A stretch of DNA of 64,000 bases from Oopsacas minuta (lineage: Eukaryota > Animalia > Porifera), in NCBI GenBank assembly GCA_024704765.1, contig JAKMXF010000006.1:1-64000 (forward strand), given 5' to 3'. The notes beneath the pieces are model-generated. The model ran no database searches. It had not been told where the DNA came from and was given only the letters and a program-made list of their open reading frames with translations. Shown one piece after another: positions 14,704 to 63,580 of this stretch (positions within the stretch are counted from its first letter, which is position 1; the number at the start of each line of letters is the position of its first letter). The translations under genes were made by a program, and so were the position numbers.

Positions 14704-15790
14704 GGTTATTTATCCTGTTGTACATTACTTCGAATATTTGGGTATAGGACTAAAGGTGTGTATATCAATTAGCCTGAGCCCATCATATACATTCGAAGAG
14801 CTACCATCTCATTTGGATAATAACAAGAAATTTCTTCATGGTAGGGATCCTGTAATTCCAGTGTAACCACATCAGAAATGGGACCAGTCAGCTTTATATG
14901 ACCCGCGCGACCGATCGTCCGATCAATCTGAAGCAACTGTAAATCTATAATCTATACTATGAAAACGCAATTAATCTCTATGTACGTGTGTGTATATGTA
15001 TATATGTTGTTGTTCGGAATTGATTGAAGAAGCTGGAAGACTCTTACGGCTGAATTTGGGCATACAGGGGTATTTTGGGCCTGGCTCAGACATATTTGAG
15101 TCTTGGACGAAAATTCACACCTATGACAAAATTATGACGTCATTGTCATCTTTGTTTAGAAATCGAAAAATCACATTATTAACCACTGCTCAGCCAATAT
15201 ACATAATATTAGTTTGAAATTTGAATCACAAGTCAACCTGTAGTCAGACCCGGCCAGCCGGCCAACACTGACCGGTTCCATCTCTGGACCTTATATAATT
15301 AGACTGGCAGCATATGAATGAAGAATTTCCACACAGGATTTTCAAATGCAAATTGCCAAATGCTAAATATTTCCATTACAATCCAGATATGGATGGAAAT
15401 GGAGTTCTCCAATTACTAATGCAACATCGATTTTCCTCAGTAAGGCAGATGCTGAACACATCAATGTTTACATCCGTATACGTACACTATAGGAATATAA
15501 GCGATTGAATAAACAGCGAGTTATTTTCATTGGCATCCTCAAAATTAACTGATTTAACTCGGGTTCATAACTTGGGTCCTGGAACGATCTATTCAGAGTG
15601 ACTCCGGTACTAACCCAGGCATTTGTGTCTTGAGCTCGAAATTTGTATCATATATTTCTATTTCCATATTGGTACGCACATATTCATTCTCGATTGTCTA
15701 AGACTCAAGGTTATATTTATAGCAAGTACTATTGGTATATTTACATTTTACAATAATTTAGCATGTACTTGTGCCCATCACATACTCAGA

Positions 15791-18700: not shown

Positions 18701-19525
18701 CCAACAACCTCATCTGTAAATTCCACCTGTACAAATATAGATCTTAGATACTTCAATCATACAAACGTATTCCGTGATCTTTTAATTACAGGAGTTTTGT
18801 TGTTAGTAGATGGCGGAGCTAGTGGTCACGAAGCTGATATTAAACTGGATTATAGATGGTATTTTGAAACTGTCTATATTATTTCAGCATTCATTATATC
18901 CGTCGTGCTGAGTAATATTCTAATCGCTCAGCTGACAGACACATATTCACAGATTTCTGTTCAGAATGAATTGCATTATAAACTGGAATTAGCCGTAACC
19001 TTAGAACATTCTTCTAATCTGTTCTTTTTCTGTGGCACAAAGCCTAGGAAATATTGCTCTTTTGAGAAAATTATATTACCCACGCAACAGTGGGAAGATT
19101 TGACAATGCAAAGTTACTCTAAAACAACTGAAGAGTTATTGTATGACGTCACAGAGAATTTATTAGAGTTTCGGCAGGAAGTTGATCAAGATTTGGATAT
19201 TAATCTAAAGTCAAGTTCTGACCTTCATAACAAAGTTGAGAATCTCGAAGAAATGTCTAGTCTTTGCCTCAAAAATATCTCAGAAATTATCACAAATCAA
19301 GAATCTATGCTCGCTAATAACAGTGGGAATGTGAGCACTGTCCCTTCGAAAATTGACGAGGATCTTTCCAGTTTCTTAACTCAATCTCGTTCAATCATGG
19401 ATCAGCAAATGAAATATTTGCAGGATTTGGAAACTCGAATGGAAGAGCGAATTCAGCGTTTAGGCAATCAATTAGATGAACGTTTAAAATCCGTGGATGA
19501 GCGGTTACAAGCACTACAAAAATAA
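15791..19525 (+). CDS. Ankyrin-repeat TRP cation channel (TRPA-like architecture), intronless
   Basis: About 14-16 ankyrin repeats, HPLVNIVVNKK pre-S1, six hydrophobic segments, S6 exit NILIAQLTDTY, C-terminal coiled coil. First ATG 15791. Confidence 0.9.
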   Translation: MADKGSPKHIPLLSIHDDASPSPVSTVGKASKSVLLSRFCRYHGKSHSVFDIKKVNSNKDVFTEDLLLASEDRRSSEPDLAELSLIHLKTGNTFKINRNMLKFITIPQLPNILYQIIDSGSIQALEYFFRNGPDLKTLSTTHNLFPLHYSAERSHSEILIWMLENKSLKNLSEKTDSKGNTLLHAACMSNNSECFKCCFEKLKEVSVDLSKIIDIQNNTFQTPLYVATQNQFQMAIEILLESGADPMIPGPGGLTSIHLAAHNGLILLLHMLLRQADSNRDELKKLFGKKVSLENGEEFNIMQMAALDTVSLLVQFGADPNTSRKESQISPLIQAAREDNLELLRVLLQSGANPNLPDSNGNTPLMGAITIGSVDGVAMLLDAGASPNLPNKAGFNAVNQCAQYGHVDVLDLLVRAGGLLVSEDMFTSALHSAAFWDEAEILRIMLTKYKAPVNTLSKISTLPVHPAIRKGHSACLRVLIDEGANIYFKSPLTGDTLLHLAVRENQREAVRLLVKARINQDEIDNDNLTPLMLAVQLNRHDLIPILFAAGASLDKTNLQGNTSLHIAAIHSSLRSAKCILDLIQTLRDTNTDKCLFEVKNLKGETPFDISLNKPKETVSRLFIEYGSSEYFLRSPKSQEDDTKRSLAANLPFNIFHRVMNNNRFKTMRVLQEKMVSYSDSQNVTLTSSFLDIDESGFLPDNENYNFRSKTVLHKLLDCAETEVKYHPLVNIVVNKKISIYRNWYLFSFLLYFVYLIFLSFALFQAATLCDPLYYTGTLDYLRLFSEIVVIFFVISFFLSELVEIWVDWYNIIQEKRLESDIAVKTIEYSGQFSSAFTLHKIRELFQKIDRRTFYFPSAFYSYFSDFYNFLDIFSIMFVIFVFILRLSDSRAQWVFASIMYIINVFRLFKYIRIIPALGAYSVIIFRIFLIDMPKFLAVFFIICLGFYGGSLLALRFSPYAPITNNCTLSNPTTSSVNSTCTNIDLRYFNHTNVFRDLLITGVLLLVDGGASGHEADIKLDYRWYFETVYIISAFIISVVLSNILIAQLTDTYSQISVQNELHYKLELAVTLEHSSNLFFFCGTKPRKYCSFEKIILPTQQWEDLTMQSYSKTTEELLYDVTENLLEFRQEVDQDLDINLKSSSDLHNKVENLEEMSSLCLKNISEIITNQESMLANNSGNVSTVPSKIDEDLSSFLTQSRSIMDQQMKYLQDLETRMEERIQRLGNQLDERLKSVDERLQALQK

Positions 19526-32129: not shown

Positions 32130-35100
32130 ATGAGCGATATTGTCCCGATACTTTCACCAGGGGTTGTACAGGAATACACCTGTCATTGCAGCCGAAAGAG
32201 TAAAATTCTTAAAAGATGGAAGAATGCAAAGATTGCTATCATCAGACAGGTCAATGTGGAACCGCCATTTCGAATTGTAGACAATGAAGATGATGTAGAG
32301 CATCTATTCATGCTCAATCAGGGCGAGAATGATAATGTGTTAGTCGAATTCGTTGATGATGACCCTCATGAACCAGAAAAATTCCTCGGAATCACCGTTA
32401 CTTGCAAACTAGAAAATTCGGTCACCACATTAAAAATGAAAGATATTGCACAACAGAGATGGTTAATGGCTTGTCTAGGTGCAACAGGTCGTGGTCTGTT
32501 CTCTCCTATCCTGGGATTGGAAGAGAGAAAGATTGAAGAACAATGGGAGGGGATCTGGGATATTACCCACGGAATCAACCCATTACAAACAGCTGAGGAT
32601 ATACACCATGCGATTTCACACACGACTTCCAAGATTCCAGATGATAAATGTCCTGATTACACAGAAGGTGACCTGAATGTATACTTGAGGGTACCCACAT
32701 ACAAAGCTCACCAACAGGATAAAGGGATGTTGACTGAACCCTTGAGAATACTACAAGAAGGAATAGCGATTACGAATAGACAACTTCATGATACTTTTCT
32801 GCCACCAATTGGTCCTCCAGTTTACGTTCTTATTAACATTGGATTTGGGTTAGAAGTAGGATTGAAAGCAGGACTACAAGAGCTCTGGGATCCTGTATTA
32901 AAATCTCGAATATTCATTGATCACAATCAACAACAAACTTTCTACCAAGATCCCAGAGAAGCTAAACAACCACCCCTACAATTAGAATGTCGCCAGCTGA
33001 TATATGGACCAGACAGGTTAGATGCAGGAGTGCCACGCGGCGACGAGGCCTGTTCCACTGTAGCATATCACGTGGAGAAAGTTGTTAGCAAGAAGTATAA
33101 ATGGGGAGCATGGATTTTGGCGAAAGGTATCGATGGAGTACACGGTCCGAGTGGACAGTTAGGAATGATAGGGCAAGTTGGTGCGAATGGGGTACATGGT
33201 GCGCATGCAGGAAGAGGAGGACCAGGTGGGCAGGGGGGTCAAGGATACCCAGGGACAAACGCAGGCATAGGTACGAATGGGACCAATGCCTCGGACCTCT
33301 CATTGTACCTATCAGGAGATTCTGAAAATCTAAAAATAGAAGGAACCTTAGAAGATTGCGTGAATTTAGGCGATCAATGTAGCGAGTATATTATGTGTGT
33401 GGATTGTACAGGAGGACATGGTGGGCACGGGGGTCCTGGCGGTCAGGGAGGGAAAGGAGGGACGGGAGGACATGGAGGGCATGGTGGTAGAGGACGCAGA
33501 GGGCACAGCGGAGGCAGTAAGCATAGAGGGGGAAGAGGAGGACGTGGGGGTGATGGTGGACAGGGCGGTCAGGGTGGTGTTGGAGGGATTGGTGGACGAG
33601 GTGGTGACGCAGCAAATTCTGGTAACGGAGGACATTGTGTTATCCACTCGAGTGATCCTAAACTGCTGCATCTAGTTGAAGTAGCAGTGAATGCAGGAGA
33701 ACCTGGTAAGGGGGGACATCCAGGATTTGGAGGGGAAGGTGGAGATGGAGGGAGTGGGGGACATGGAGGGAGTGGGGGGTCGGGAGGTAGTGGACATCCG
33801 AGCGGATCTTCTGGGTTCTCAGGATCAAGGGGTCCGGATGGGATGACTGGATACATTGGGCAAAATGGACCACCTGGCAATAACGGATTTAAGGGACGAG
33901 ATGGAGGATTACTTTTCATACTCCTTAGCACAGATGGCCAGACAGTGATCGAACAATCTGGCTATAGATACCATGTAAAAGTTGATTCCCAATCACTCAA
34001 TATTAGATCTGCAGTAGACGATGGGATATTTGAGCCTAACGAAGAAATCACAGTGGATAAATTTACTCTACAGAACATCGGGCAAATGACTTTACCTGAA
34101 GGGGCACTTGTATCAATGGTATCGACTCCAACTGTAAAATTTCATCCAATAATATTCAAGCTACCCATCCTAGCTCCACAACAAACGATGGAAGTTACTC
34201 AAGAATTTGTAGGTAGAGTATTTGATGTTCCGTCGCCCAATTCCGAGGGTCCGTATTTGGGTGAGGCCTACTTTGAAACAAGAGTTGATCTTCTAGGTCG
34301 GCCATTTGACAGTGCGAAGACAATCCACAGACTTATTGTGCAATACCCTGTTAAGGTAGATAGCATTGTTATACCAGAGAATCTAGGTAGAGGGGAACAA
34401 TCCAGCATTCATGTTACTCTAACAAACATTTCAATGCTCCATTATGGTAACTCCCCTGGATCAGGTGGAGAAATTGCCTTGAAAGTTCATTTCGACAAGA
34501 GAGTGCTGCCATTTGCAATTGTAACAGAAGATTCGAGTTGTCCTTACAGAATACATTATGATCCTAATGTGCCTGATAGTTTCTATGTTGATGTGATTCA
34601 AATACAATCTGCTAGCAAAATTACAGTCACTTTCAATGTTGTTATATCAAATACTGCTGAGTTGTTTGATAGATGTCCAGTACAGGTGGATCTCCTTTTG
34701 AGAGGGAAACTAATAGAGTATCGTCAGCATTTTATTCGTGTTATTCCCTTCTACATTCCTTCACAGCCTCCAGCTGATATCTTATTCATAACTGATAGAT
34801 CTATTTCTAGAAAAGAGTTCGTTCTCTGGCAGAGATTATTCGAATTACTAGGTGCACGAGTGGATTTCTGGGATAGAGATCGATTTGAAGGGTTCTCGTA
34901 CAAAGGTATGACAAGGTTGAGACATGAATTTAGTTGGGTAGGAAGACATAGTGGGTCACTGATTCTATTTCCAAACTCACCGTTTCAATATTTCGATCCA
35001 AATGATGTGGTTGCTCATCTTAAAGATGATAGTAGATTGAGCATTGATTCCAATTCTGTGGCAAATGATTCAGCAGTATTGTTTATAGCTGATTTACAAA

Positions 35101-36026
35101 CAGAAGACCTAGTTATTAATGAGGTGAAGAAATTTATACAATGCGTTTGTCTACAGGTCCCGAAAACTACGCTGGGAGGGGCGGATTTCGGAGGAAACCA
35201 CCTGTTCAGTCCGGACGCTGATGATTTCAAAGAGAGACAGAATGAGATTGTCAAAAACTTTGAGACGGAGCCGCCGGTCAACCGTTTCTACATTTCAAAT
35301 GTTGATTTTAAACCACAACGACTTAAATTTGTTACATTCTCTTATGGGTCCCTTGATATACAGAGACTCCCTATTGACCCTACAGCCAAATTTATGATTG
35401 TTACAAGACCAGTGAATCGGTTTACATTAGACGATCCCCACTTCAGTGTCGGGCAAAACGAAATCCCTCTAGGATGTAACTGGGGGCAAACATTACTATA
35501 TGTTCTCCATGGACTCCCGTGTCATTTAAAGTTTTCAATTTTACAAGGAAATCGTGATGAAGAGATCTCTATAAAATTTGTGACACCTTCAGGTACGATC
35601 TTGGAACTTATAGAGTTAGTACATTTATCAATAACGAAGGAGATAATCGCAGAAGTCAGCTGTTTGTCGTTAAACCTGCCGAAACTAGCTGCACTCACTA
35701 CTCGTATTCTTGGTGAGTTGGATACTTTTATCAGAAACTCTATTCATATCTTCCCGATAATCACTGCTGTCAAAGTATACGCGAAAGACAATATCCCGAA
35801 AAAACAAAAAGACGTGAAACAGAAAGTTCTGGAATATTGTAGACAGATAAAAGACAGACTTATCGAATTCGGTGGAAAGGAAATTGGAGAACAGTACAAA
35901 AGATCAATGAGTTTCTCTGAAGATAAGAAACGAATATATTTCGAGAACCTTGTCAATAGTGGACACACATTTGAGCCTCATGTATACAATCTCAGCAAAT
36001 TGAACAATGAACTGAATCGCATATAG
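32130..36026 (+). CDS. 1298-aa uncharacterised protein: PH-like, WW-like, interrupted Gly-rich (GxxG/GGx) region, beta-sandwich, alpha/beta domain
   Basis: Single 3.9-kb ORF. SKILKRWK..QQRWLMACL (PH-like); LQELWDPVLKSRIFIDHNQQQTFYQDPR (WW-like, 32862-32957); Gly repeats about 33126-33905; DDGIFEPNE. Confidence applies to the CDS; domain calls are by eye. Confidence 0.88.
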   Translation: MSDIVPILSPGVVQEYTCHCSRKSKILKRWKNAKIAIIRQVNVEPPFRIVDNEDDVEHLFMLNQGENDNVLVEFVDDDPHEPEKFLGITVTCKLENSVTTLKMKDIAQQRWLMACLGATGRGLFSPILGLEERKIEEQWEGIWDITHGINPLQTAEDIHHAISHTTSKIPDDKCPDYTEGDLNVYLRVPTYKAHQQDKGMLTEPLRILQEGIAITNRQLHDTFLPPIGPPVYVLINIGFGLEVGLKAGLQELWDPVLKSRIFIDHNQQQTFYQDPREAKQPPLQLECRQLIYGPDRLDAGVPRGDEACSTVAYHVEKVVSKKYKWGAWILAKGIDGVHGPSGQLGMIGQVGANGVHGAHAGRGGPGGQGGQGYPGTNAGIGTNGTNASDLSLYLSGDSENLKIEGTLEDCVNLGDQCSEYIMCVDCTGGHGGHGGPGGQGGKGGTGGHGGHGGRGRRGHSGGSKHRGGRGGRGGDGGQGGQGGVGGIGGRGGDAANSGNGGHCVIHSSDPKLLHLVEVAVNAGEPGKGGHPGFGGEGGDGGSGGHGGSGGSGGSGHPSGSSGFSGSRGPDGMTGYIGQNGPPGNNGFKGRDGGLLFILLSTDGQTVIEQSGYRYHVKVDSQSLNIRSAVDDGIFEPNEEITVDKFTLQNIGQMTLPEGALVSMVSTPTVKFHPIIFKLPILAPQQTMEVTQEFVGRVFDVPSPNSEGPYLGEAYFETRVDLLGRPFDSAKTIHRLIVQYPVKVDSIVIPENLGRGEQSSIHVTLTNISMLHYGNSPGSGGEIALKVHFDKRVLPFAIVTEDSSCPYRIHYDPNVPDSFYVDVIQIQSASKITVTFNVVISNTAELFDRCPVQVDLLLRGKLIEYRQHFIRVIPFYIPSQPPADILFITDRSISRKEFVLWQRLFELLGARVDFWDRDRFEGFSYKGMTRLRHEFSWVGRHSGSLILFPNSPFQYFDPNDVVAHLKDDSRLSIDSNSVANDSAVLFIADLQTEDLVINEVKKFIQCVCLQVPKTTLGGADFGGNHLFSPDADDFKERQNEIVKNFETEPPVNRFYISNVDFKPQRLKFVTFSYGSLDIQRLPIDPTAKFMIVTRPVNRFTLDDPHFSVGQNEIPLGCNWGQTLLYVLHGLPCHLKFSILQGNRDEEISIKFVTPSGTILELIELVHLSITKEIIAEVSCLSLNLPKLAALTTRILGELDTFIRNSIHIFPIITAVKVYAKDNIPKKQKDVKQKVLEYCRQIKDRLIEFGGKEIGEQYKRSMSFSEDKKRIYFENLVNSGHTFEPHVYNLSKLNNELNRI

Positions 36027-37912: not shown

Positions 37913-39244
37913 TTACCAATTAATCTTAGACCTCAGAAGGTAAGACCCATTTTCTTCTGATGACCAAATCATCTCCCAAATAGTATTACGAGTACACTCA
38001 CAATCAACGCCGTATAAATTACAACCTTGCCAGGCGTTACCAGATCCCTCAAAAATAGTAGGAACCTTCCTACCTATATTCGTGCTAGACTGAAAAGTTT
38101 TGTAAGACACACAAGAATCTCCTCTACATTCACACCAGAATGCATCTCTATAATGACAATCTTCCTTAACTTGACAGCCATAAGGGGCTATAATACATTC
38201 GTATTGAGGATAAGCATCAGTACTTGTCTCACTATGGTTAAACTTCTGTAACTCAACGTTAGTAGCACTCACAAGGTAATCACAGCCGAAATTAAGATAT
38301 CCCTCGTAGTAAGCTTGTAGATTAATTGCCTTAGCGTAATGCTCTGTATTATAATATTTGCTTTGCAAAAGTTCCCAGATTGGCATGAATTTGTATTGGA
38401 TTGGTGAATGAGTAGAGTTAGCTTCTTCGAAGAATTTCTTGGTTAGTTCTAAAGAGTGGTTGACGTAGAGAGCTGATCTTGTAGCTAGCGTACCTCCTCT
38501 TAATACGAGGCGAGAAGAGATAGACAGACTAGATACGGATGAATTATCTTCTTTTGTAACTCCAGAACAAATATCCAACCCAATACTCCCTCGTGGAATT
38601 GATCCTGCAAAATCTAAACAAGCTTTAATACCATATTGTTTGGCAGTATAACTATTACTTGCATCTGAAAAGCAATGCTGATATATTCCCGAACCATATT
38701 TCACATCAGTTACAATATGAGAGTTATATGTATCAAGGAATAACTGGTAGGGTGTCCATTCCGATTTCAACCAAGGTTTCTCGATGGTTGTAGGTAATTT
38801 CTCAAACGCCTCGACCAGTGAAACGTCAAGAGCTTGATTGTGCAAACATTTATGATCCATAGAAGCCTTAGAACTTTGTGAATATGCGCTGTAAGTAGAA
38901 CCACGTACCTTATTAGAACTACCACTAATACTATTAGTTATGAACCCCAGTGTAAACCCCATAGTAAAGTCTACCTCTAATTTGAGAGATATGGATGTAT
39001 CACTTGCAATGGAATGATAGAAAGACTTTGTATTCTCATAGAAACTAGAGTCACCTTGTATTATATCAACATCAGGGAGGGAGAGTATGCACTGGGGAGG
39101 TAGGTCTTTGAATACGGGGTATCCTCCAACTAGGTCATCATCCAGGAGACCGACTTTAGGCACGTAGAAGCTGGTACCGATCGGTGAGGTATCTGGCATA
39201 GCTCCCTCCAATAAGAAGATAATTGGAATGAGAATCAATAGCAT
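37913..39244 (-). CDS. Secreted MACPF pore-forming protein of the sea-anemone PsTX-60/AvTX-60 (DELTA-alicitoxin/thalatoxin) type
   Basis: Signal peptide; SFYENTKSFYHSIAS, KPWLKSEW..Y..FLDTYNSHIV, KAC..FAG, LVLRGG, SPIQYKF.PIW.LL..KY..TEHYAKAINL..YY.GYL.FGC, GCQ..EDCHYR.AFWCEC. Confidence 0.9.
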   Translation of the reverse strand: MLLILIPIIFLLEGAMPDTSPIGTSFYVPKVGLLDDDLVGGYPVFKDLPPQCILSLPDVDIIQGDSSFYENTKSFYHSIASDTSISLKLEVDFTMGFTLGFITNSISGSSNKVRGSTYSAYSQSSKASMDHKCLHNQALDVSLVEAFEKLPTTIEKPWLKSEWTPYQLFLDTYNSHIVTDVKYGSGIYQHCFSDASNSYTAKQYGIKACLDFAGSIPRGSIGLDICSGVTKEDNSSVSSLSISSRLVLRGGTLATRSALYVNHSLELTKKFFEEANSTHSPIQYKFMPIWELLQSKYYNTEHYAKAINLQAYYEGYLNFGCDYLVSATNVELQKFNHSETSTDAYPQYECIIAPYGCQVKEDCHYRDAFWCECRGDSCVSYKTFQSSTNIGRKVPTIFEGSGNAWQGCNLYGVDCECTRNTIWEMIWSSEENGSYLLRSKINW

Positions 39245-42859: not shown

Positions 42860-45800
42860 TTAACCTGCTGGTTCATCCTTGCCAACTGTCCCGCGATCTT
42901 TATCAGTGTCATAGAGGAATAATTCAGAATCACATTTGGAAGAAGCGAAATACAATGGAAGACACAATGGAATATACAAGAAGATAAAGTATAGGAAGAT
43001 CGTCATAAAAGTAGGAAAAAGGTAGCAATAAATGTTTCGTAATTTATCATAACATACATATCTCATGAAGATCAATTCTTGCCACAAGTCATTGGAAACA
43101 ATCATATAGTGTATCTGGATATCTCCTCTTCAACTCCTCAACTAGTAATATCCGATAGGTGATATCATCAGGGTTTTTAACAGCCTCATGGGTCAGTATA
43201 TTACCTTCTTCATCTGGGATATCTAGACATGAACCTGTTTTTAGAAGTTCTGTAAATGCATAAACATTCAGATGTTGTATAGCATCGTGCATAGCAGTTC
43301 TTTTATGCTTATCTTGAATACAAATTAAGTGTTTTGCACTGCAAGGGGCGTTTTCTTCGTGCTTTCCATCTAATTTTTCACAAGCATTCAGTACGCTGTC
43401 GAGGATCGGTTGATGAATTGTGGATACCTCTGTACATTTTTGACCATCTGAGAATGATGGGATTATTGCAAGATGAAGGGGTGTTCGCTCATTATCATCT
43501 CGGATATACATTGCTCCTATATCAACATCTAAAAGAATGTTTACTACGTCAGAATATTTCCGTTCTATAGCTAGATGTAATGGCGTGTAGCCGTTATGAT
43601 TTTTCAGACGTGTAATAATTCTGTCTGAATCTGAAGAAGGTTCAGGCTCATTTTTCAAAATTGTTTCAATAAGGACCATTCGTTTTACTGAATCTAGAAA
43701 TTCAACTGCTATATGTAGTATTGTTGATTTATCGTCTTTATGTGGATAGAATGGAGATTTTGATTGAAGAAGAAAATTGGTAACTTCGATATTACCATTT
43801 TGTATGGCTAGATGCAGAGCTGTGTCGCCATTCAAGTTTCTTATTGACAGAAAGGTTTGTTGATTGGGGGCATTTTCATGAATAATTTGTACATAAAGTA
43901 AATCTTCTGTTTTAACAGCATAATGTAGCGAGGTTTCACCATTATTGTCTTGGACATAAAGATCTGGTTTGTGTTTCAAGAGAACATTCAAATTATCCAT
44001 TGTTTAGCATGTATACAAGAATGTAACATAGTTTGTCCTGAAGAATTTTTCAAATCTAGTATACTAGAATATTTACTCGTCAATTTGATGGATTGAGAGA
44101 TCCATTCTAAAACGCGATTAATAAATTCACAAGATTTACCTTGGACAATCATAAGTTGTATTAATGTGTTCTTTCTTTCACCATGTGTGTAGTGCAGCTT
44201 TGGAAAATGTTTGAGGAGAGACATTAGGGCATCTGGAGTTTGATCCAAAATACTCAAAATTTCTAAAGAGATGTACATTTGATCAGATTGTCGAATAAGA
44301 TTATGGAGAGATTGATCCAATTTTGAATCTACACTGCTAGTAGTATCGACCTCAATCTCTTCACTACTACCTCCAATCAACGCTGTACTGTTCAAACAAA
44401 ATTCTAGGAGGTCCGTTTCATCGTAATCATTTGAATCGCGTTTCAATTGTTGAATTCCAATAATACATAATGTTAAATCCAAATGTTCCTCTACACAAAT
44501 AGATTGACAAAATTGCCTATCGGTCTCATTGAAAGTATCAGGAAAAGGTTCGGGGGATCCACTATTGTCAACTATCTCTTCGTGTAAACTGTCTGCCATT
44601 GGTTGACTTTCTGATTGTTCACTTGAGAGTGAATCTAAAATAGTTGCTAATCCTCTCGAAATTTCTTGCTTTGTAACATTAGGGTTTAACATAGAAAGAA
44701 GATGAATGATTTGAGGATTGAGGATAGCTTCTCTCTGAAACAAATTCAAATCTCTTCGTAGAATTAAAATTTGTAAATCAGTGAAGAAGTTAAGGGAATA
44801 GAATTTGTTGTGTGCAAAATCTAAAGTGACACTCCAGGTGTTTAGTTTTGCATTTCCCAACTCAATCTCACTTTTAAGTATTGGGATAGCTTCAGCCTGG
44901 CATTTAAATTGCTTAACATAATTAACATACGAAATATGGCCAAGATACTTCAATTTTTCAACCATCAGGCTTATTTCAGTGATATATCCGAAAATTGATG
45001 TGAATAATTTTATATGTTGCGTAGCATTTGATTCTGCTTTTATCAATGCAATTTTACTCTGAAGATCTTTCAAATTTTCCAAGTTATATACCCGACTAAT
45101 AGGTGAATGTTGTATGTAAAGGTGGATATTTCCATCACCACTATTGTTGTCAAGGTTAACCTCAAAATATCCCACTTCGAAGATGTCTGTGAGTTCCTGA
45201 ATTGTACTTTTACCCACTGAACTATGGGCAATTTCTAAATGTTTCCAAATATGGAGCAAGTTAGCAGCTTCATTGAAAGTTTTCAAAAACCTGTCTTTAT
45301 CCACTATTTGATCATTCACTTGATTGAAAAGGTTTATGAATTGATCGTAATTACAATTTGGGCTCATGTCGAATATTAGGGGAGCTAAAGTATTACAGAC
45401 TGAACGCAGGCATGTAATGCGGTTGATATCGAAGTCGGTTACGTCGCAAGATGTTAGTGCTAAATCTACGAAAACTTTCACTTGCTGTGTATCTTTCAAT
45501 GTAGCTCTCGCCCAAAGAATGAAATTTGGGTGATTAAGAAAAGTTTTGAGAAGAGATTCAGCGAAAGAATCGAACTTATTTACTTGTGCAAATATCGTTT
45601 CTAACTCTACTGTAATGATTTCCAAGGTATTCTCTGTTATGAATTGCTCCTTCTGTAGGTTAACTAGTGTATCTAATTGCACAAAGTCTCCTTCTTTACA
45701 GTAATGTACATGTACTTGATAAATTAAGGTAGCTACTTTTGAGGATTCTTGGAGTTGGAAATATTTAAATATCAGTCTAGCAGAGTTATTGATTTCTTCG

Positions 45801-48739
45801 TCAGGATTTCGGAATTTCAATTTCATTATACTAATTGCAGAGGATAGACAGGAAATTTCATGCTTGATTTTATCTTTAGCTTCTCGAAAAATGCTGAAAT
45901 GTTTTTCAACATCACTAAAGAATTTTGCGATTATGCAAAGTTGTCACTGTAACTTCACATTTCAGGTATGCAGGGTACCAAATTTCGTCGTAAACTTCCT
46001 GAATATCAAGGATCTTAGCTTGACTAAAATTGTATTTGCGCAATACTATTCTTTTAAAAATATTCAAAAATACATTAGATTTTCTCAAATGAAAAGACGC
46101 GTTTAGCATTTTTTGAATATGAAGCAAATTTAGATTAGTCGCTAGGATTGAATTTGGGAGAATGCGATAATCAACGGGCAAATTTCCATTGCAGATTTCA
46201 TCTAGTGGCTGCGCCTCAAAATCTATTTTCAAGAAATCTTTTAATTCTTGTGACTCTAAGAGGTGAGTAGAGAAATTGAGGATACAAATGAAATTGAGGA
46301 TTAATTTAGTTTGCTCGTCAAAAAAGTCTAATTTTTCCTTAGAAACTTGAATGACATCTTCAATACTAGCTCGATCGAATTCTGCTTGACGAATTATATT
46401 TCTAGAAGTGAGTGTGTCAAATATAGATAAAAACCTCTCCCTACCTTCGTTAAGATGTCTCAGATTCTTCATTTGAATGTTGACTGCTTTAGAGACTGGA
46501 GAATAATTACGAACTCATCTTCAGCATGTCTCACTTGTTGAGTTATTCCATAGCTATTATATTCAATCCCGTGTAACGAGAATTTAAAGAGTATTTGCCA
46601 TGGCGTCCAAGAGAGAATGTGAGACGTTGGATTCTCCTCAAAAGTATCTTTTTGTTGTTTGTAAATGACATTTAGGATTTCGAGCAGTTCTGCAGTAACA
46701 GGTAGATGTAGAAGATTTGCCAAAATGATTTCCAGGGAGGCGTGGTCTTGTTTCTGACTTAGTAAATCTATGATGCGAAATTTAAAGTAAGAATGTATTT
46801 TTGTTTCGAACTTATGGTTTGTTGATAAATATACGAAAACTTTTAGCTGAATAGTATCACTCAAATCCTGAATTGCCAGTAAGAATTGCTTTTCTACTAC
46901 TTGCTGCCAATTATAAGTGTTTGGAAATTGAAGTGAAAACAATGAATCCCATACATTTATTCGTTGGATAATTATCTCGAAATTTCTTTTATCTCGAATA
47001 TTGAGAAATGAATCAAGTTTTTGAATGAGAATCAAAATTAATTCTGAGGAAGATTTGAAATGTTTTGCATTGACGAAAAATGACTCAGAATCGTTAGTTG
47101 ATAAAATATTCTGCTGAATTTCTTCCAGCATTTGTAATATTTTTACTGTTAATGTTAGGTGTAAAAATACAATATCCGTATTGATGAATTTATCGTCTAA
47201 TTCCCATAGATAGAAAATTGATTCACACATTAGATAGAGGTCTGATTCAGTGATAAATTGCTGATTTTCATGGAGTTTGGAAATCATATATGAGTATATC
47301 TGACACCTCAATTGCATTGGTGTATAGTCACTCGGCCAGGATTTTATTCTATATACAAGAACTGGTAATAAATACTGATAGTTGATAATATTTGAGGAAA
47401 ATTGTTGAAAGTTTTCATTACTTATTGTGATCAATACAATACTGTAGGGTAGAATTGGATCATAATCCCTCAATATTTTTAGAGCCGATTCACAATAGTT
47501 CACATCCTGAAAATTGTAACAACATTTAGTATCGATATTGGCTGGGAAGCCCCAGTATTCATTAGCGAGTATTTCTTGCTGCTTATGGAGTATTACAAAT
47601 CGATTTGAAAATTTAAACATACAATGGTATAATGGTAGAAACGTTATTAAGTGTTTGCTTGAGACATTATGAGAGCCTGTAAAAATAATATTATCAAAAC
47701 ATTCTTGCAAATTTTGAATTGTCTTTTCACTATTTTGAAAGTTTTCAAAGAAGAAAATTTTATTGGCAATTAGATATGCTATACCATGCAAAGTGAATGT
47801 ATTTAATACTTTTTCCAAAAGTTTCTTGTATTCTTCTTCAGGTTTTCTCTTGCGTACCAAAAGTAATGAAAATATCAAAAATCTTAGTGATTTTTCGGGG
47901 GAATTGTCTATCTTTATCTCACTAACTATCCATCGTGTAACAGAGTCAACCTCAGGGTTAATAAAGTCGTCCTTAACTCCCAAATATGTAGAGAAGATAC
48001 CTTGTGATATAGTTTGGAGAGTTAAAACTTGTTCTTCAAAGGTAAAGAATTTTTCTTTAATATATGTATGGTTAGCAAATAAGTGGAATGAAATTTTCCC
48101 TAATTTTATATTACTTAACTTTCCTATTTCATTTGGCAATACCATGGTGTCGTATTTATCAATTATGTTATCTTGTAAGTTTCCCCATCTAATATAGAGG
48201 CAGCGGTTATATTTATCTCCTTGCCCTAGATTTTCTTCTTTACCGTTTAGAAAGTATTTGTAAGAAATCTCAAAGGAGCTTCTTGAATGAAATCTTATGT
48301 TTTCTTGAGGTATAATTACACAACCCTCCAGGAAAATGTAATCTCTCTCTCCATATTTGATTCTCTCGGTTAGTTTCATGCATGTGGTGTCCTCCTTTAA
48401 ATTACCAAATGAAACCCCATTAAACCTCAGCGTTAGATTACCATTGATAGACTTATAATGTTCTAGAAACATGATTGTTTTGAACATTATCTTGAGACTA
48501 GAAGATTGAAACGAAAGACAAATTGTTTCTTCCAAGCATTCCTTGGGTTTCGATATAATTTCGCATTGTGGTTTGGAAATTGGAATTGATACGGCATCTT
48601 CAAACTGTAGGTTTTCTCCACACATTGGGCACACTTTAAATGAATTGGGGGCTCCATTAGGGAAATTATCATTAAATTTACAATGACTAGAGACACATCT
48701 CTTAATAAGCTTCTTTGACTGAATTGGACTGCAATCCAT
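42860..48739 (-). pseudogene. Frameshifted chimera: RNF213-like N-arm, ankyrin repeats, start of a TRP S1
   Basis: RNF213-like motifs (FKVCPMCG, EISYKY, NRCLYI, KVFVDLAL, YNLENLKDLQSKIAL, FYSLNFFTDLQ, YISLEIL); same frame continues into ankyrins (GQTMLH, GETSLHYAV, GDTALHLAI, GYTPLHLAI); frame breaks near 46470, 45915, 44000, 43095. Confidence 0.8.
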
Positions 48740-50038: not shown

Positions 50039-51184
50039 CAGGCTTGCCGTGGATATGGATATCCATAGGATATTCAATAATAGGGATGCTGTTATAATTA
50101 AATTGACAATATTACTAAGTACACTTACTAGTGTTGTTCAGTAGCGGCTCTAGCATGGGGTTAGATGGGGCTAGCGCCCCATCTAAATTTTGTCGGCCCC
50201 ATCAGCTAAGCTGGTGTATTACATGTAACTAACCAGCACCACACGATTATTATTTCATACCGTATGAATATCAAATTATGAAATTATTTGATTTCCCAAT
50301 TGAGAATCGATTATGATGGAAAATTAGTTATTATCGGTAAGATCGGTGAAGTCGTGTAGGTAGCCAATTATTGTAATGTCAGCAATTGTTGTGTCACGAA
50401 TAGTGCCAGATTTCATGTAAAGTTTTGAATTCTTTCAAGATCTATGTTGGTGAAAGGTAACAAATTACTATGCAATTATGATGCAATTATTGCTACTGTT
50501 ATTCATCCCTTTCACTCGTGAATTCTGGTGTTGCTAGCCAAAAGGCAAAAGGCTACTACTCTTGGTACAGAGCTCCAAGAATTCAGAGACACCCGGTACC
50601 AATGAAGGATCCAACTCAGTTTTGGCGGTACAGTGTCTTAACACGTCTGCGCACCTATGCAAAGATAATTTTCTCGGCACCAATATCTTCTACAGCCGTG
50701 GAGAGGTTGTTCAGCCAGGTCGGCAACCTACTTTCAAAAATAAGAAAGAGAATGTCACCGGCGGTCATGAAGAAATTAGTATACATCAGATACCAGAAAA
50801 TGTATATCACAATAATCAAGAAGCTGGGAATTGTAATCGAGCCAAAGGAAGTTGCGATGGCCATCAACAATGAGCCCATGTCCCTGTCATTTGAAGACGA
50901 TAGTGATATCGAAGAGTTTATGAATGACAGTTTACATAGTATCTAGAGCTTCAGTATATAACGTTTAGTATAGGAATAGATTTTCATTAGTAATCTACAT
51001 CTACATAGCGGTTACCTGTACATAATAGTCACCACTCTTGAATGGCCGTTATAGACAAGATGTTCTAGGTCTTTGAAATATTCATGGATATATCCTGGTT
51101 GTTGGATATCCATGGATATCCATGGATATTCACGCAAAAATGACATGGATATGGATGGGATTTTTCTCATCCACGGCAAGCCTG
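50039..51184 (+). mobile_element. Internally deleted hAT transposon
   Basis: Perfect 16-bp TIR caggcttgccgtggat / atccacggcaagcctg; perfect TSD atatttag (50031-50038, 51185-51192); ggatatccat subterminal repeats. Confidence 0.95.
50518..50946 (+). pseudogene. hAT transposase C-terminal dimerisation fragment
   Basis: DPTQFWR..LRTYAKIIFSAPISSTAVERLFSQVG..R.RMSP..MKKLVYIR; the DDE N-terminal part is missing. Confidence 0.88.
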
Positions 51185-55977: not shown

Positions 55978-57207
55978 ATGGCAACAAATCAGCTCATAAT
56001 TGAACCAGTTAATGAATTGGCACAATTCGATTATGTCGCTACTCAAATCATGAATAGGTTCGATCTCCTAATTAAGCAACTGATCGCGAGAAGGGACGCT
56101 CTCCTGGGGAAACTCAAAGATATGAAAGATGCATATTTATCAAAAGAGAGCACCCGTAAGTCAGCCATGGAGGAACTGGCCAATACTCAACGACACATGG
56201 AGGAACTAAGTCTGAAAGTTAATGAGAACAAAGATCTCCATCAACAGGCCACTGACCTATATCAACAGCGGATCAAACAGCTAGAGACTCCCACAAAACT
56301 CCAGCAGCCCTTCTTCTCCTGTTCGATGCTGTCCCAACTACAAACTCAGATCGCTGAGTTCGGAGAGGTGAAAGAATGGGAGCTAGACTACTCTCTGAAG
56401 AAAGAACCTATCCTAGCTGTTGGGAAGGAAGGGTACGGTAACAATGAATTGAATGCTGCAGGTCTATCTCTAGATGAACCAAATCAGTTAATTTACATAG
56501 CTGATTGGGGTAACAGTCGTATTCAAGTTGTGTCTTTTGAAGGAAAATTCTTGGAAAGATTTGGACAAGACATACTCAAGAGACCATGGGGAATAGCTGT
56601 GACAGAAGATAACGTCTTCATTACGGACGAAGATATCCACGCTTTGTTACAGTTCAACAAGAAGGATTACAAACTGGTGAAGAGGACTGGTAACAGAGGA
56701 GCAGGAGATGGAGAGCTAAATCTACCACAAGGACTCTGTGTTGACTACAATGGGGACGTGTATGTTGCTGAAGTTAGCAATCACAGAGTTTCTATATTCT
56801 CCAAAGCTCTTGAATTTGTTAATTGTTTGGGTACTCAACAGCTAAAACACCCTAAGGATGTTAAAGTTACTCCCACTAGCATCGTTGTGCTAGACTACAA
56901 TCCTATTTGTGTCCACTTCTACTGGAGAAGTGGACACCTTATATACTCATGTATTACTCGTAGGACCGATGGTGTTGTGTATGGTCCCGCCTTCTTTAGT
57001 TTGGATGTAGTAGGGAATATTCTTATTACTGATATTTTCCGTAACAATATCAAGATACTATCTCCTTCAGGAGAGCTAATACACACCATAGGGAGGAGAG
57101 GACATGGGAGAGGAGAATTTACAAATTCTTTTGGCATTAGTATTTCATCATTAGGAACTATTTATGTTATATCTCATAATGCTTATTTCTGTTTACAAGC
57201 TTTTTAG
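55978..57207 (+). CDS. Coiled-coil plus NHL-repeat protein (TRIM-NHL-like, no RING/B-box seen)
   Basis: Helical N-terminus; NHL repeats YIADWGNSRIQV, RPWGIAV, LNLPQGLCVDYNGDVYVAE, GRRGHGRGEF. Confidence 0.9.
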   Translation: MATNQLIIEPVNELAQFDYVATQIMNRFDLLIKQLIARRDALLGKLKDMKDAYLSKESTRKSAMEELANTQRHMEELSLKVNENKDLHQQATDLYQQRIKQLETPTKLQQPFFSCSMLSQLQTQIAEFGEVKEWELDYSLKKEPILAVGKEGYGNNELNAAGLSLDEPNQLIYIADWGNSRIQVVSFEGKFLERFGQDILKRPWGIAVTEDNVFITDEDIHALLQFNKKDYKLVKRTGNRGAGDGELNLPQGLCVDYNGDVYVAEVSNHRVSIFSKALEFVNCLGTQQLKHPKDVKVTPTSIVVLDYNPICVHFYWRSGHLIYSCITRRTDGVVYGPAFFSLDVVGNILITDIFRNNIKILSPSGELIHTIGRRGHGRGEFTNSFGISISSLGTIYVISHNAYFCLQAF

Positions 57208-59940: not shown

Positions 59941-60831
59941 CAATTCGAGTTTACAGAAAATAGAAATTCCGCGCTTAATTTTGGCAATCTAAATAAAAGC
60001 GCTGCTGTAAGAAGGAAGGCAAAATTTGATTTGTCAAGTTTACAGAAGTTCTCTAATGATAATAGGATTGAATTGGTTAGTTAACAACAGTATTATTGGA
60101 ATGCTATAGTGGGTAGTAATGTTAGAGGGTACATTCAGTCATTAGGACACAACCCCTTTATTATTCATTTATATACTGAAGACCAAATTAAAATATTAAA
60201 ATGTTTTAAAGATAAAACCATAATTCTTCACCTAGATGCTACTGGCTCAATCATTCGAAAGATTGAACCTTCCCAGCACATAGTATTTTATTATGCTCTC
60301 ACAGTACAACATCCAACTTGTTCTACCAGTCCCGTACCTCTGGCAGAGATGATCAGTTCTGGTCATACTAGCGCTGAGATTACTTATTTTCTACACAAAT
60401 TGTATCTTGATGTAAAGAAAATATTAGATTATAATATTAACAGAGGACAAGTTGAGATAGATTTCAGCTGGGCGTTAATCCATAGTGTGTGTAATGCTTT
60501 TCTTAAATGTGATATTGATACATATCTTGATAAATGTTGGAATAGAGTGGATACAAATTCTGCCAATCAGGAACTAGAATTAAAATTGATTCTCCATTTA
60601 TGTTCTGCCCATATAAGGCATGGTATTGGCTTTCACATTAATAGGAAATTTAAGTTAAATAAAGAAGTGAGAAAGTTGTTTTTGTATTTCTTTGGATATC
60701 TGGCGCGTTGTACTAATATTACTCAAAGAAGTTCTGTGATTACTTCCTTGTGTTATGCGTTTATGAGTAAATATATAAATGAACATGTATTAACCAATAT
60801 TAAAACATTAGAGTATTATATCCCGGTATGA
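59941..60831 (+). pseudogene. MULE-superfamily (NOF/foldback-like) transposase relic
   Basis: LHLDATGS, FYYAL, PVPLAEMIS, IDFSWALI, LHLCSAH (D..D..CxxH); in-frame TAA just upstream of 60109; truncated at 60831. Confidence 0.8.
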
Positions 60832-61129
60832 CTAGTTGAATTTCTGCTTTCAATTTGCTTTTCATCCCAGAGCTAATAAAATTTTTCAAGGTCGTAAGCG
60901 AATAAGAGATATATCAGGAGAAAAATGTATTGAAGAATGGTCCAGGAAAAGAAACAGCATTGTGGCTATTTGTACTCGAAAACATGAAGTAGAGTATAAT
61001 ACATCAATCAAAAAATATGAAAACACATAATGAGTTATAGTAGTTAGTTTTTCTAGAATCAATTACATTGTTCAAGCAAATATCAGTAATCCCAATTAAA
61101 GTGGGAATTTCTTTTCAACAGGGTTGGAT

Positions 61130-61957
61130 TTATTTCGTACATATACACACGCAACCAATTATCACACCAATACAGCAAATAACTATTGAGCAGGGGAGTA
61201 CACACGCTAGTATAGATGCTAGACAGATCCAAACCTCGGAGCAATTTGTGATAACTGAAGGTGCATCGTTATCATTTGTAGTCTTCGGATATGTAGATTG
61301 ACGACTAAGTCTATCTGAGTAAGGACTGTAAGTGTTTTGCGAGGAAATATTCTTGATAACAGGAGGATATCTGTCTACTTCGTCATCAATATCGAATTTC
61401 AATTGTAAACGCGGATTAGTGACTGGGGAAGAATTGCGTATTCCCATATTGGCTTGCAATGAATCATACTGAGGTGGTCGAGAAATGAGTGGTTCTTGTC
61501 CCTCGTAACTATCTTTCACATATTCAATAGTTACAACTTCAGAAGGTATGCATTTTAAAAATACTACTTCTTGGTAAGCACAAGCGAATCTTTTTTGTAC
61601 CTCGTTTTCTAAGAAATAATTACGATTGTTATCGTTTGTTAGGTCAATTGCAGAATTGGCTATTTCAGGATAGCTTGACTTTATCTTAGAGATGTTAATT
61701 TTCACAATTGTTGTTCTTTTATTTTTGTATTTCTGGGAAGTCTTATCATCAGCTGTTTCAAGCCAATTCTTGGCTTTTGCTAAGCTACTTGTAGTAGAAA
61801 TGTATTGTGAAGGGATTCTTAATCCACTCTGCACGTGTTGAGCTATACTTCTTATAGAAGTTGAATCTTTACATGTTAAATCCTGGTATGGATTTTCATT
61901 AGGTCTTAACACACGATATACATAACGAAAATTGAAATTCTCGAGGCCTAAGGACAT
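61130..61957 (-). CDS. Putative R-S-E clade ADP-ribosyltransferase domain with C-terminal Cys-rich TM anchor
   Basis: YVYR (R15), QYISTTSS (S54), YQEVV (E130) within residues 1-145; low-complexity linker; 34-residue hydrophobic tail with 8 Cys. Confidence 0.75.
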   Translation of the reverse strand: MSLGLENFNFRYVYRVLRPNENPYQDLTCKDSTSIRSIAQHVQSGLRIPSQYISTTSSLAKAKNWLETADDKTSQKYKNKRTTIVKINISKIKSSYPEIANSAIDLTNDNNRNYFLENEVQKRFACAYQEVVFLKCIPSEVVTIEYVKDSYEGQEPLISRPPQYDSLQANMGIRNSSPVTNPRLQLKFDIDDEVDRYPPVIKNISSQNTYSPYSDRLSRQSTYPKTTNDNDAPSVITNCSEVWICLASILACVLPCSIVICCIGVIIGCVCICTK

Positions 61958-63580
61958 GATATCTGGAATAGAGTGTATTTATATGCTAGAATATAATCAA
62001 ATTGCACAGGACCAATATAGATGTTAAGCTCTATGTGTATCAGATTAATATATTTGTAATCCATGATCCATACAAAATATTAGCATGGGCTCCTATCATG
62101 ATAGAGCCACGCAGGAGCTAAAAGATTTGCAGTATTCTATCAAATTGATTTGGTTATCACAATAATGTTATAAAATATGTGCAATATTAGAGAACACAAT
62201 GATATTCTTGCCCCTTTATTGACATTGGGAGCGCTTGCCCCCAGAATCGAGGCTTTGTACGTGTATACCTTGTGTGTCCTACCCAGAGGCTGCGCCAGTC
62301 GGAGAAATTAGTGAACTAGATGGGTTATACAAAACTCAGAGTGCGATGAAAACAACGATATTTATAGTGCCGACTATACTTTAGTATAAAGCTCAGATTG
62401 ATCTTAGTCCCTATATTTTTAACCGTAGACGGTGCACAGTCAAAAGTATTATAGATTAAGGGCTGAAATTGTCAGGGTAGATCGATTATTACCAATCACA
62501 GAATTTATCTAAATAATACCAATGGAATGATTAAAAATGCACCGTATATGTAGTGTTCACGTTACAAATTTCCTTAATTCTACAAACCCCGATATCTCCT
62601 AAACTTAAATACTGTGTAATAATAGAAGATGTTTAATAATACGTATCAAGTAGTAAATTTCCGCAAAAACGAATGGCTGAGTAAGATGGTTCTATTTTGC
62701 TAGAATTCATACATTCAAGCATAAAGGGGCTTACTAATAAGTGAGGGTAACGAGCGAGAAGTAATTTATTAGTTTGAATAGTTTAACTTTGAATTCTACA
62801 TTTGAATTAGCTTCTAACACTTCATCCAGTAGATCCACTACTGTGTCCACAACTCTTCAATATTTCCCTGACACAAGGAAATATCCTGGGGTCTGACTAC
62901 ACCACGGCCCAAACTCCGTCACTGGTCCTACATGAGATATGTTACGTCCTATTTGTAACTCACCTATGGTGGTGAGCTAACCCTGCCTCTGGAAATCTAT
63001 TCTTGTAAGGGATAAACTTAATTGGAAGTAATAGAGGAAAAATTTGAATCTACTAGATTATACAATATGGCAGATCAATAGTATTTCTATTTTATTATGC
63101 ACTTGTTGCATACTTACTGTATATTTGATATATCAGTTTATCCATCGATATCTAGTTACCAATAATTATATTTGTATTTATGAAGGAATTGAGTATACTT
63201 TGTATACTATCCAGTTAATGAACAACCCTTGTAATTGTATGTAGTATTTGTAAATTCTGAGGTTACCATACGTCCCTTTGGTATTATGTCAAGATCTCAT
63301 TATATATATAGGGCTGTAGGACATCATTCCTCACCACATTTAACTTTCCTGGAAATTTTACTGTTTCAATTAATTCTGTCAGTGTCCCAGATCATATCAT
63401 TCTGACCATTCAGAGGGTGGAATAACTCGAAAGGAGGGAGAGTTGTCTGAGAAAACCAAATACGCCATTCATTAATCATATAGGAAGTTATCCACTTCTA
63501 ATTTGCTACACGGCCTCGGAGACCCTTGCTAATTCCAGAAATAATGCCAGCATACCACCATGCAAGCAGAGGCGTAGCCT

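Follow-up and report, generated by a model that had tools for sequence, protein, structure and literature searches.

A 64,000-nt stretch of genomic DNA from the glass sponge Oopsacas minuta (hereafter, the window) encodes, on its minus strand, a protein of 275 amino acids whose N-terminal domain belongs to the Pfam family DUF7587 and has the features of an R-S-E-type ADP-ribosyltransferase (ART). An identical protein is present on contig JAKMXF010000006.1 (126,794 bp) of assembly GCA_024704765.1, in which the record and window coordinates are the same, and tblastn found one copy of the ART gene within the window. An initial annotation of this DNA had described an intact 275-aa open reading frame (ORF) in an animal genome and had named no strand; the frame runs from ATG to stop at 61130-61957 on the minus strand, and the window carries plainly animal genes. 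By Pfam, these comprise carbohydrate sulfotransferases, DcpS, an eIF5-like piece, and NHL-repeat, ankyrin, ankyrin plus ion-channel, and MACPF ORFs, and there is also a hAT fragment. The GC content of the window is uniform (32-38%), with the exception of one spike. The features of the ART gene are listed below, together with their counterparts in its closest characterized relative, the bacterial Rhs toxin tip RhsF-CT (TreThr).

61130..61957, minus strand: complete coding sequence of the sponge DUF7587/ART protein (275 codons plus stop, ATG start), annotated in the O. minuta record as a single 275-aa coding region without splicing
61523..61957, minus strand: ART domain, residues 1-145 (Pfam DUF7587), basic (pI 9.1), with predicted strands at residues 12-16, 52-56, 84-88, 130-134, and 142-144
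61913..61915, minus strand: codon of R15, after Y14; Arg of the R-S-E triad, invariant, pairs with R1403 of RhsF-CT/TreThr
61835..61837, minus strand: codon of H41, a near-invariant His between strand 1 and the STT strand
61796..61798, minus strand: codon of S54, first residue of S-T-T in strand 2, invariant, pairs with S1445 of RhsF-CT
61568..61570, minus strand: codon of E130, the catalytic-type Glu opening strand 130-134, invariant, pairs with E1497 of RhsF-CT
61238..61522, minus strand: linker, residues 146-240, predicted to be disordered (pLDDT < 50 at 152-240), acidic (pI 4.9), 45% S/T/P/N/Q, variable among paralogs
61133..61237, minus strand: Cys-rich hydrophobic tail, residues 241-275, predicted helix at 241-274 with one or two residues after it; putative tail anchor and possible palmitoylation target
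61958..62010, minus strand: proximal upstream region (~50 nt), conserved among paralogs, in which an AG 5 nt before the ATG follows a pyrimidine-rich run; possibly a 3' splice site or a core promoter
63103..63207, minus strand: upstream block (~100 nt), conserved in the five paralogs examined, where its distance from the ATG is 247-1260 nt; possibly a non-coding leader exon or a promoter element

By our own arithmetic (~7% stop codons at ~33% GC), 275 open codons are expected about 1e-4 times per 64-kb window in six frames. Independently of this estimate, the ART ORF is not a chance ORF, because it has 26 close and 183 representative relatives and is under purifying selection (see below). A Pfam scan of the sponge protein returned DUF7587 (PF24494) alone, at residues 31-142 with 31.8 bits against a gathering score of 27 (E = 1.9e-7), and no ecto-ART or delivery domain; the relatives carry the same precomputed DUF7587 assignment. 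NCBIfam gave one far sub-threshold match to the sponge protein and nothing more. A word-indexed search recovered 26 relatives, nearly all on large ENA contigs of up to 1.3 Mb, plus one O. minuta model, and the alignment of the 26 showed a conserved 145-residue N-terminal domain, a linker variable in both length and sequence, and mostly a hydrophobic, Cys-rich end. When residues 1-145 were used in an exhaustive search, 183 representatives were obtained at E <= 1e-3. Conservation was assessed in an alignment of 72 sequences, consisting of 71 diverse representatives and the window domain, and in a larger set of 190 relatives, each covering 80% or more of the core columns.

The R-S-E signature had initially been proposed from three motifs, Y14-R15 in YVYR, I53-S54-T55-T56, and Y128-Q129-E130. 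All three occur at these positions, and R15, S54, and E130 were the only invariant columns among the 72 sequences. Each of these residues was also kept in at least 184 members of the larger set (R15 in 185/185 non-gap rows, S54 in 188/190, and E130 in 184/187 non-gap rows), as was H41 (186/190), and position 14 was aromatic (Y, F, or W) in 184 of the 190 relatives. The columns conserved at 90% or more in the 72-sequence alignment were Y14, E21, H41, G45, S50, I53, T55, I87, A125, V131, and P138. The residue at position -2 relative to E130 is Y128, and the family column contains mainly Tyr (32/72), Ser (23/72), or Phe (7/72). With Tyr at this position, the Q/E-x-E motif is absent; this motif marks the Arg-specific and guanine-specific subsets of ARTs, not the R-S-E clade.

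The ART fold implied by the initial annotation was borne out by structure prediction. An AlphaFold2 model of the domain, built on the family alignment, was confident (mean pLDDT 91, pTM 0.86); in this model, R15 ends the predicted strand 12-16, S54 lies within the predicted strand 52-56, and E130 opens the predicted strand 130-134. When the domain model was compared with the PDB using Foldseek, almost all of the top 50 matches were R-S-E ARTs, and seven had E <= 1e-3. The best match was the pertussis toxin S1 subunit (E = 1.7e-4, TMq = 0.61), and the others included EcPltA, the typhoid and PltC toxins, cholera/heat-labile toxin (LT) A1, the Rhs tips TreX/TreTu, ScARP, and Scabin. Foldseek gave no match at E <= 1e-3 against viral structures; no viral origin is indicated.

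At the sequence level, the family profile (A2) matched 9zdm_B, annotated as a "Probable Rhs-family protein", at E = 7.7e-17 among the PDB sequences, and 9zdm_B was still the first match (E = 1.8e-4) with a profile of the closest sponge-type relatives only (A1). It was not reached by single-sequence phmmer against the PDB sequences, which returned noise only; a match of the linker to a capsid protein entry in that search was insignificant and of low complexity (E = 0.43) and was not used. Below the threshold, the family-profile search gave consistent matches to ScARP, Scabin, and ArtA around the STT strand. PDB entry 9zdm is the RhsF-CT/RhsFi complex of Chromobacterium violaceum, in which the toxin adopts an ART fold; in vitro, it ADP-ribosylates RNA. 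The immunity protein blocks the pocket residues R1403, S1445, Y1456, and E1497 of the toxin, whose toxicity depends on R1403, Y1456, and E1497, an "R-Y-E" triad (PMC13324451). A second study named the domain TreThr, confirmed the requirement for R1403 and E1497, and identified its target as the GGU anticodon of charged tRNA-Thr (PMC13617354). The Rhs toxin tip thus linked to DUF7587 was solved and characterized only in 2026. Counted along the profile alignment, the sponge residues R15, S54, and E130 correspond to R1403, S1445, and E1497 of RhsF-CT, and H41 corresponds to the His of its H-V-x-x-G motif.

The fold and family leave room for an acceptor other than RNA. In one alternative, the acceptor is a protein, such as a membrane-proximal GTPase or a cytoskeletal protein, beside which the tail would position the enzyme. 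The best Foldseek matches (pertussis S1, EcPltA, cholera/LT A1, and TreX/TreTu) all modify proteins, and R, H, S, and E presumably follow one another in an order and at intervals similar to those of pertussis S1, which we take as a lead rather than a test. Furthermore, other Rhs ART tips act on FtsZ or EF-Tu (PMC13617354). However, the sole significant sequence relative of known activity modifies RNA, the E-x-E signature of Arg-specific protein ARTs is missing, and the domain is basic; we regard a protein acceptor as unlikely, while taking it seriously. Another possibility is that the protein acts mainly as an NAD+ glycohydrolase that depletes NAD+ locally or on activation instead of passing ADP-ribose to a macromolecule. 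ART-fold Rhs tips with NAD(P)+ glycohydrolase activity are known (Tne5; PMC13285283), and the non-canonical -2 residue leaves the acceptor chemistry open, but no NADase family emerged from the sequence or fold searches and the characterized homologue, TreThr, is a transferase. This alternative appears rather improbable to us.

In bacterial-type relatives, the domain is located at the extreme C-terminus of delivery proteins, such as a 2481-residue "RHS repeat-associated protein", and the other carriers are fragments with RHS repeats and an RHS core, pretoxin-HINT proteins, and one protein with a ricin-type lectin. Across the 190 relatives, the domain was C-terminal in 69, N-terminal in 58, essentially alone in 48, and internal in 15; this pattern is the signature of a polymorphic-toxin tip. 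The resemblance to such tips noted in the initial annotation is thus matched by relatives that end Rhs, pretoxin-HINT, and ricin-lectin proteins. That the family has bacterial members follows from the Rhs and PT-HINT architectures together with 9zdm.

Four bivalve species account for the named animal relatives (Ruditapes philippinarum, Mya arenaria, Mytilus trossulus, and M. galloprovincialis). In these and on other invertebrate-type contigs, the domain is carried alone or N-terminally, often in tandem arrays; the Mya and Mytilus scaffolds concerned measure 83-95 Mb. Signal peptide and hydrophobic tail are both absent from the bivalve proteins, which have acidic or low-complexity extensions instead. 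In one R. philippinarum protein (P0072, XP_060607505), the ART domain is C-terminal and is preceded by a long Ser/Glu-rich tandem repeat and, at the N-terminus, by a segment resembling an integrase by eye; this is either a different animal architecture or a chimeric gene model. Mid-distance relatives (30-35% identity), frequently arranged in tandem pairs, come from eukaryote-type contigs on which ORFs are sparse and fragments of reverse transcriptase occur, and close paralogs are also in tandem at one locus. Clustered or tandem DUF7587 genes were seen on eukaryote-type contigs from several ENA/JGI samples, at loci L003 (3040-3705, 6001-6867, and ~11469-12319, reverse), L006 (3236-3802 and 6001-6537), and L009 (2349-2927 and 4465-5013). 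In a rough neighbor-joining tree, which carries no support values and in which most tips have no taxonomy, the sponge-type sequences formed one group and the five bivalve sequences fell in two places; we draw no conclusion from it about how many transfers took place or in which direction. That R-S-E ARTs of polymorphic toxins have been transferred into Lepidoptera and Mollusca is an established precedent (PMC3482391). A term search of the O. minuta genome paper (PMC10280926) found neither "toxin" nor "horizontal gene transfer".

A bacterial-type domain in a sponge assembly raises the question of an artefact, either contamination or a decaying insertion without function, and O. minuta hosts abundant microbes (PMC10280926). 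Because the window is uniform in GC content and carries animal genes, contamination is not tenable. The gene lies among animal genes on a 127-kb contig at a uniform GC content of 33-35%, its paralogs are found on contigs of up to 1.3 Mb, and its bivalve relatives are on chromosome-scale scaffolds. The ORF and the triad are intact and dN/dS is below 0.45, so that an artefact of either kind is hardly credible. Over the 145 domain codons, the 10 pairwise comparisons of five intact paralogs gave dN/dS values of 0.26-0.44 at dS values of 0.2-0.63, which indicates purifying selection.

The second O. minuta copy is on contig JAKMXF010000109.1 (L004 7731-8563) and shares 87.5% DNA identity with window positions 60981-61789. 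It is truncated at its 5' end and lacks the part of the domain that bears R15 and S54. The public model LOD99_11142 (P0025) joins the linker region of this copy to unrelated downstream sequence and is likely a mis-annotation. An alternative reading takes the family not as a host defence gene but as the toxin component of a selfish element, of the toxin-antidote or transposon-associated kind, that spreads through the genomes of invertebrates; copy-number variation, tandem arrays, and one truncated copy speak for it. Transposon fragments occur nearby (hAT dimerisation, a PAX/HTH transposase-like gene, and RVT), and DNA transposons make up 15% of this genome, which is compact (1.59 introns per gene, mean intron 341 bp) and belongs to an animal with syncytial tissue (PMC10280926). 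However, no conserved partner gene, terminal repeats, or transposase was consistently linked to the paralogs examined, and, apart from the short upstream block, the paralog flanks are unshared beyond ~140 nt upstream and ~50 nt downstream. We consider a selfish element quite improbable.

The initial annotation had described a Cys-rich hydrophobic C-terminus and had read the protein as signal-less, anchored at its C-terminus, and facing the cytosol. In the full-length model, a confident domain (residues 1-147) is followed by a linker with pLDDT < 50 at 152-240 and a single helix at 241-274 (~34 residues), an arrangement that fits this reading. The last 37 residues hold nine Cys, and the hydropathy of the tail is 2.5-2.96 (Kyte-Doolittle, 19-residue windows). 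By the same scale, the sponge protein has no other hydrophobic segment, and there is no signal peptide: residues 1-19 have a hydropathy of -0.11, and the first strand of the fold begins at residue 12. A strongly hydrophobic C-terminal segment is present in ~18 of the closest ~25 relatives. The protein therefore reads, in its predicted structure, as a tail-anchored protein with its N-terminal catalytic domain facing the cytosol, and S-acylation of the Cys-rich tail is plausible from its composition. Like tail-anchored and CYSTM proteins, the sponge protein has a single hydrophobic, Cys-rich helix at its extreme C-terminus, after a P/Y/Q/S-rich low-complexity region; in contrast to them, its helix is long (~34 residues) and has no CYSTM family match. 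A CYSTM identity of the tail was not supported, with Pfam at E <= 10 returning nothing for the window tail and only noise for three paralog tails. The literature searched contained no case of a Cys-rich tail module fused to an ART of the toxin type. An ankyrin-DHHC palmitoyltransferase gene (L001 11046-12728, plus strand) lies 4 kb downstream of a Cys-rich-tailed paralog (P0002); this could be a coincidence or could bear on tail S-acylation. Near the window copy, a Pfam scan of the ORFs of at least 130 aa identified no DHHC gene.

The upstream region bears on the N-terminus and hence on this topology. A good splice acceptor 5 nt before the ATG had been proposed initially, with room for an upstream exon that could change the topology. 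An AG at -5 behind a pyrimidine-rich run is common to four of the five paralogs, and an in-frame stop lies 24 nt upstream of the ATG. The conserved upstream block ends in AG|GT in three of the five paralogs; in L002 the donor is GC or a GT displaced slightly, and the GT site of the window copy is weaker. Together, the block and the AG at -5 fit a leader exon with an intron of variable length, or a promoter element. Frame arithmetic showed that, in four of the five paralogs, a stop closes the main reading frame 3-13 nt ahead of the putative donor, with no ATG between; therefore, an upstream exon, if real, would be non-coding and would leave the predicted topology unchanged. Thus, the acceptor part of the proposal is reasonable, but under this splice model a coding extension or change of topology is excluded in those four. 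Among the five, only the window copy offers an in-frame ATG, located 43 nt ahead of the putative donor, and this would permit a 16-codon extension. A TATA-like run 20-27 nt before the ATG was set aside as a promoter, being unconserved in the paralogs and too near the ATG. The hexamer GATATC recurs in the upstream block (63103-63207, minus strand; TAGATATCAG, all five paralogs) and directly before the start codon (61958-61968, minus strand); GATATC-ATG is present in the window and in L003b, with near-matches in the other three paralogs, and it could be a regulatory element.

The shared AG, the conserved upstream block, and the in-frame ATG of the window copy would also permit an exon encoding an unrecognized signal peptide, in which case the protein might be a secreted or granule-stored toxin (venom-like, as pierisin and CARP-1), with the tail as a propeptide or packaging signal. 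However, the frame is closed before the donor in four of the five paralogs, the 16-codon extension of the window copy is unshared, protein conservation in the paralog alignment begins at M1, and the bivalve RefSeq relatives have no signal peptide. A secreted toxin is accordingly very improbable in our view.

Other genes and features of the window and its edges were recorded alongside the ART gene. A MACPF ORF of 443 residues (37913-39244, minus strand; E = 1.9e-10), a pore-forming, immunity-type gene, lies ~22 kb from the ART gene. At 15623-19525 (plus strand), an uninterrupted, apparently intronless ORF of 1300 residues contains many ankyrin repeats followed by an ion-transport domain, in the layout of a TRPA-like channel. 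An ORF of 1298 residues at 32130-36026 (plus strand) has DUF7932 as its sole Pfam match, and its first 2 kb form the only compositional anomaly of the window (32-34 kb: GC 0.459, GC skew +0.24; GC elsewhere ~0.34). Long same-strand ORFs at 43089-48739 (minus strand), a 303-aa ankyrin ORF followed by ORFs of 612, 185, and 756 aa without a Pfam match, may be exons of one large gene. Two ORFs encode NHL-repeat/six-bladed beta-propeller proteins (9339-10238, plus strand, 299 aa; 55978-57207, plus strand, 409 aa). Remains of DNA transposons around the locus include a hAT dimerisation-domain fragment (50518-50946, plus strand) and, just beyond the window, a PAX/HTH_29/HTH_32 transposase-like gene (L005 5-466, corresponding to 64492-64953 of the record). 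Convergent with the ART gene, a 240-residue ORF with a GTG start (60109-60831, plus strand) ends 300 nt from the ART stop. It is uncalled in the public record, has no Pfam match, and does not resemble the additional portion of the O. minuta model P0025; it is no recognizable partner gene and may be a decayed piece of a transposon.

Taken together, we hold it probable that the gene encodes an R-S-E clade ART of the bacterial polymorphic-toxin type, belonging with TreThr to DUF7587, which is resident in an animal genome under purifying selection, and whose product would be tail-anchored, with RNA as the hypothetical acceptor and a hypothetical role in conflict or defence. This suggests that the animal has taken over a bacterial weapon for use in its own cytoplasm. 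As judged from the sequence and the model, NAD+ would be bound in a cleft formed by R15, S54-T55, and E130, and ADP-ribose would be passed to a macromolecular acceptor. The protein would be inserted post-translationally as a tail-anchored protein, possibly also fixed by S-acylation, so that the basic catalytic domain would be held at the cytosolic face of the membrane. The most likely acceptor would be RNA, either tRNA-like or foreign, because a tRNA anticodon is the target of the sole characterized family member, the domain is basic, and Q/E-x-E is absent. The most likely role, in the syncytial tissue of glass sponges, would be that of a lineage-expanded conflict or defence effector, or of a regulated effector of cell damage, as lineage-specific expansion, tandem arrays, and fast-changing linkers suggest.

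Several observations weigh against this interpretation. The main difficulty is self-toxicity, that is, a toxin of the translation-targeting type facing the cytosol with no conserved neighbour as an immunity factor; no neighbour gene was conserved among the window and paralog loci examined. Control would have to come from expression, membrane sequestration, substrate specificity, or unlinked hydrolases. Y1456, reported as the third catalytic residue of RhsF-CT, has no equivalent in the sponge protein and pairs with L66, in a column that is Ala in 36/72 and Leu in 12/72 sequences; the adjacent column (W65) is aromatic in 65/72 rows. The closest Foldseek neighbours modify proteins and not RNA, and the acceptor class is, as the initial annotation had held, not readable from a -2 position that is Tyr, Ser, or Phe across the aligned family. 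We infer the placement of R15, S54, and E130 in one NAD+ cleft from the strand positions and the alignment to the 9zdm pocket residues, not from coordinates. O. minuta itself has only one intact copy in addition to the 5'-truncated copy, and the PADLOC defence models matched neither the sponge protein nor two bivalve proteins. In the literature searched, no paper named DUF7587 and none joined O. minuta with ADP-ribosyltransferase, so that the family in animals is uncovered there.

A more far-reaching proposal, tentative and in our estimation doubtful, is that glass sponges and, independently, bivalves and other marine invertebrates keep lineage-expanded, Rhs-derived, TreThr-like RNA/tRNA ARTs, the sponge form being tethered by its Cys-rich tail to the cytosolic membrane face as an innate-immune or cell-damage effector that stops translation locally in a syncytium. 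If this is true, it would be the first animal-encoded RNA-modifying ART of the TreThr type and a new architecture for a domesticated toxin. If RNA targeting is true, RNA ADP-ribosylation would become a candidate effector mechanism in the immunity of an early-branching animal. The favoured interpretation also raises the question of how and why a syncytial animal keeps an apparently catalytically complete toxin of the translation type in its own cytoplasm.

Among known systems, TreThr/RhsF-CT shares with the sponge protein a homologous, basic catalytic domain of ~125-145 residues with Y-R, H-x-x-x-G, I-S-T-T, and E-V motifs. In contrast to it, the sponge domain is N-terminal instead of capping an Rhs cage, lacks any FIX, PAAR, Rhs, or HINT part, is encoded by an animal together with a linker and a Cys-rich membrane tail, and has L66 at the position of Y1456, reported as essential. 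In structure, the model comes closest to the pertussis S1, EcPltA/ArtA, and cholera/LT A1 toxins (E = 1.7e-4 to 5e-2, TMq 0.5-0.61), which share the strand-1 Arg, the S-T-S/T strand, the catalytic Glu, and a conserved His between R and S; however, they show only 15-19% identity and no significant sequence match (ArtA, E ~1). The sponge protein differs from pertussis S1-type toxins in lacking the A2/B-subunit apparatus, a signal peptide, and the disulphide-activated loop, in its length (~145 residues versus 180-240), and in its Tyr at -2. Vertebrate ecto-ARTs (ARTC1-5) have a signal peptide, are GPI-anchored or secreted, and face outward. Like them, the sponge protein is encoded by an animal, belongs to the R-S-E clade, and would be a membrane-attached mono-ART; unlike them, it has no signal peptide, a predicted C-terminal helix, a predicted cytosolic orientation, and no Pfam ecto-ART match. 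Pierisin and the clam CARP-1 are the classic animal-encoded toxin-type ARTs and, together with ScARP and Scabin, are guanine-specific. This group shares membership of the R-S-E clade with the sponge protein, targets nucleic acids, and provides the precedent for a polymorphic-toxin ART in animals (PMC3482391). ScARP and Scabin match the sponge model in fold (TMq 0.51-0.54, rmsd 3.3-3.7) but belong to a different family, with insignificant sequence matches (ScARP, E = 0.26; Scabin, E = 0.47-2), and no named match to pierisin or CARP-1 occurred in the searches; moreover, the sponge protein lacks the Q-x-E motif and the ricin-type receptor domains. The R-S-E polymorphic-toxin-type ART domain is thus known already, as an existing Pfam family, whereas the functional link between DUF7587 and TreThr, the presence and expansion of the family in a sponge and bivalves, and the fusion to a Cys-rich tail anchor appear to be undescribed. 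Through the link to the RhsF tip, DUF7587 gains a probable function, and the entry and expansion of this toxin family in sponge and bivalve genomes adds to the short list of animal toxin-type ARTs headed by pierisin and CARP-1.

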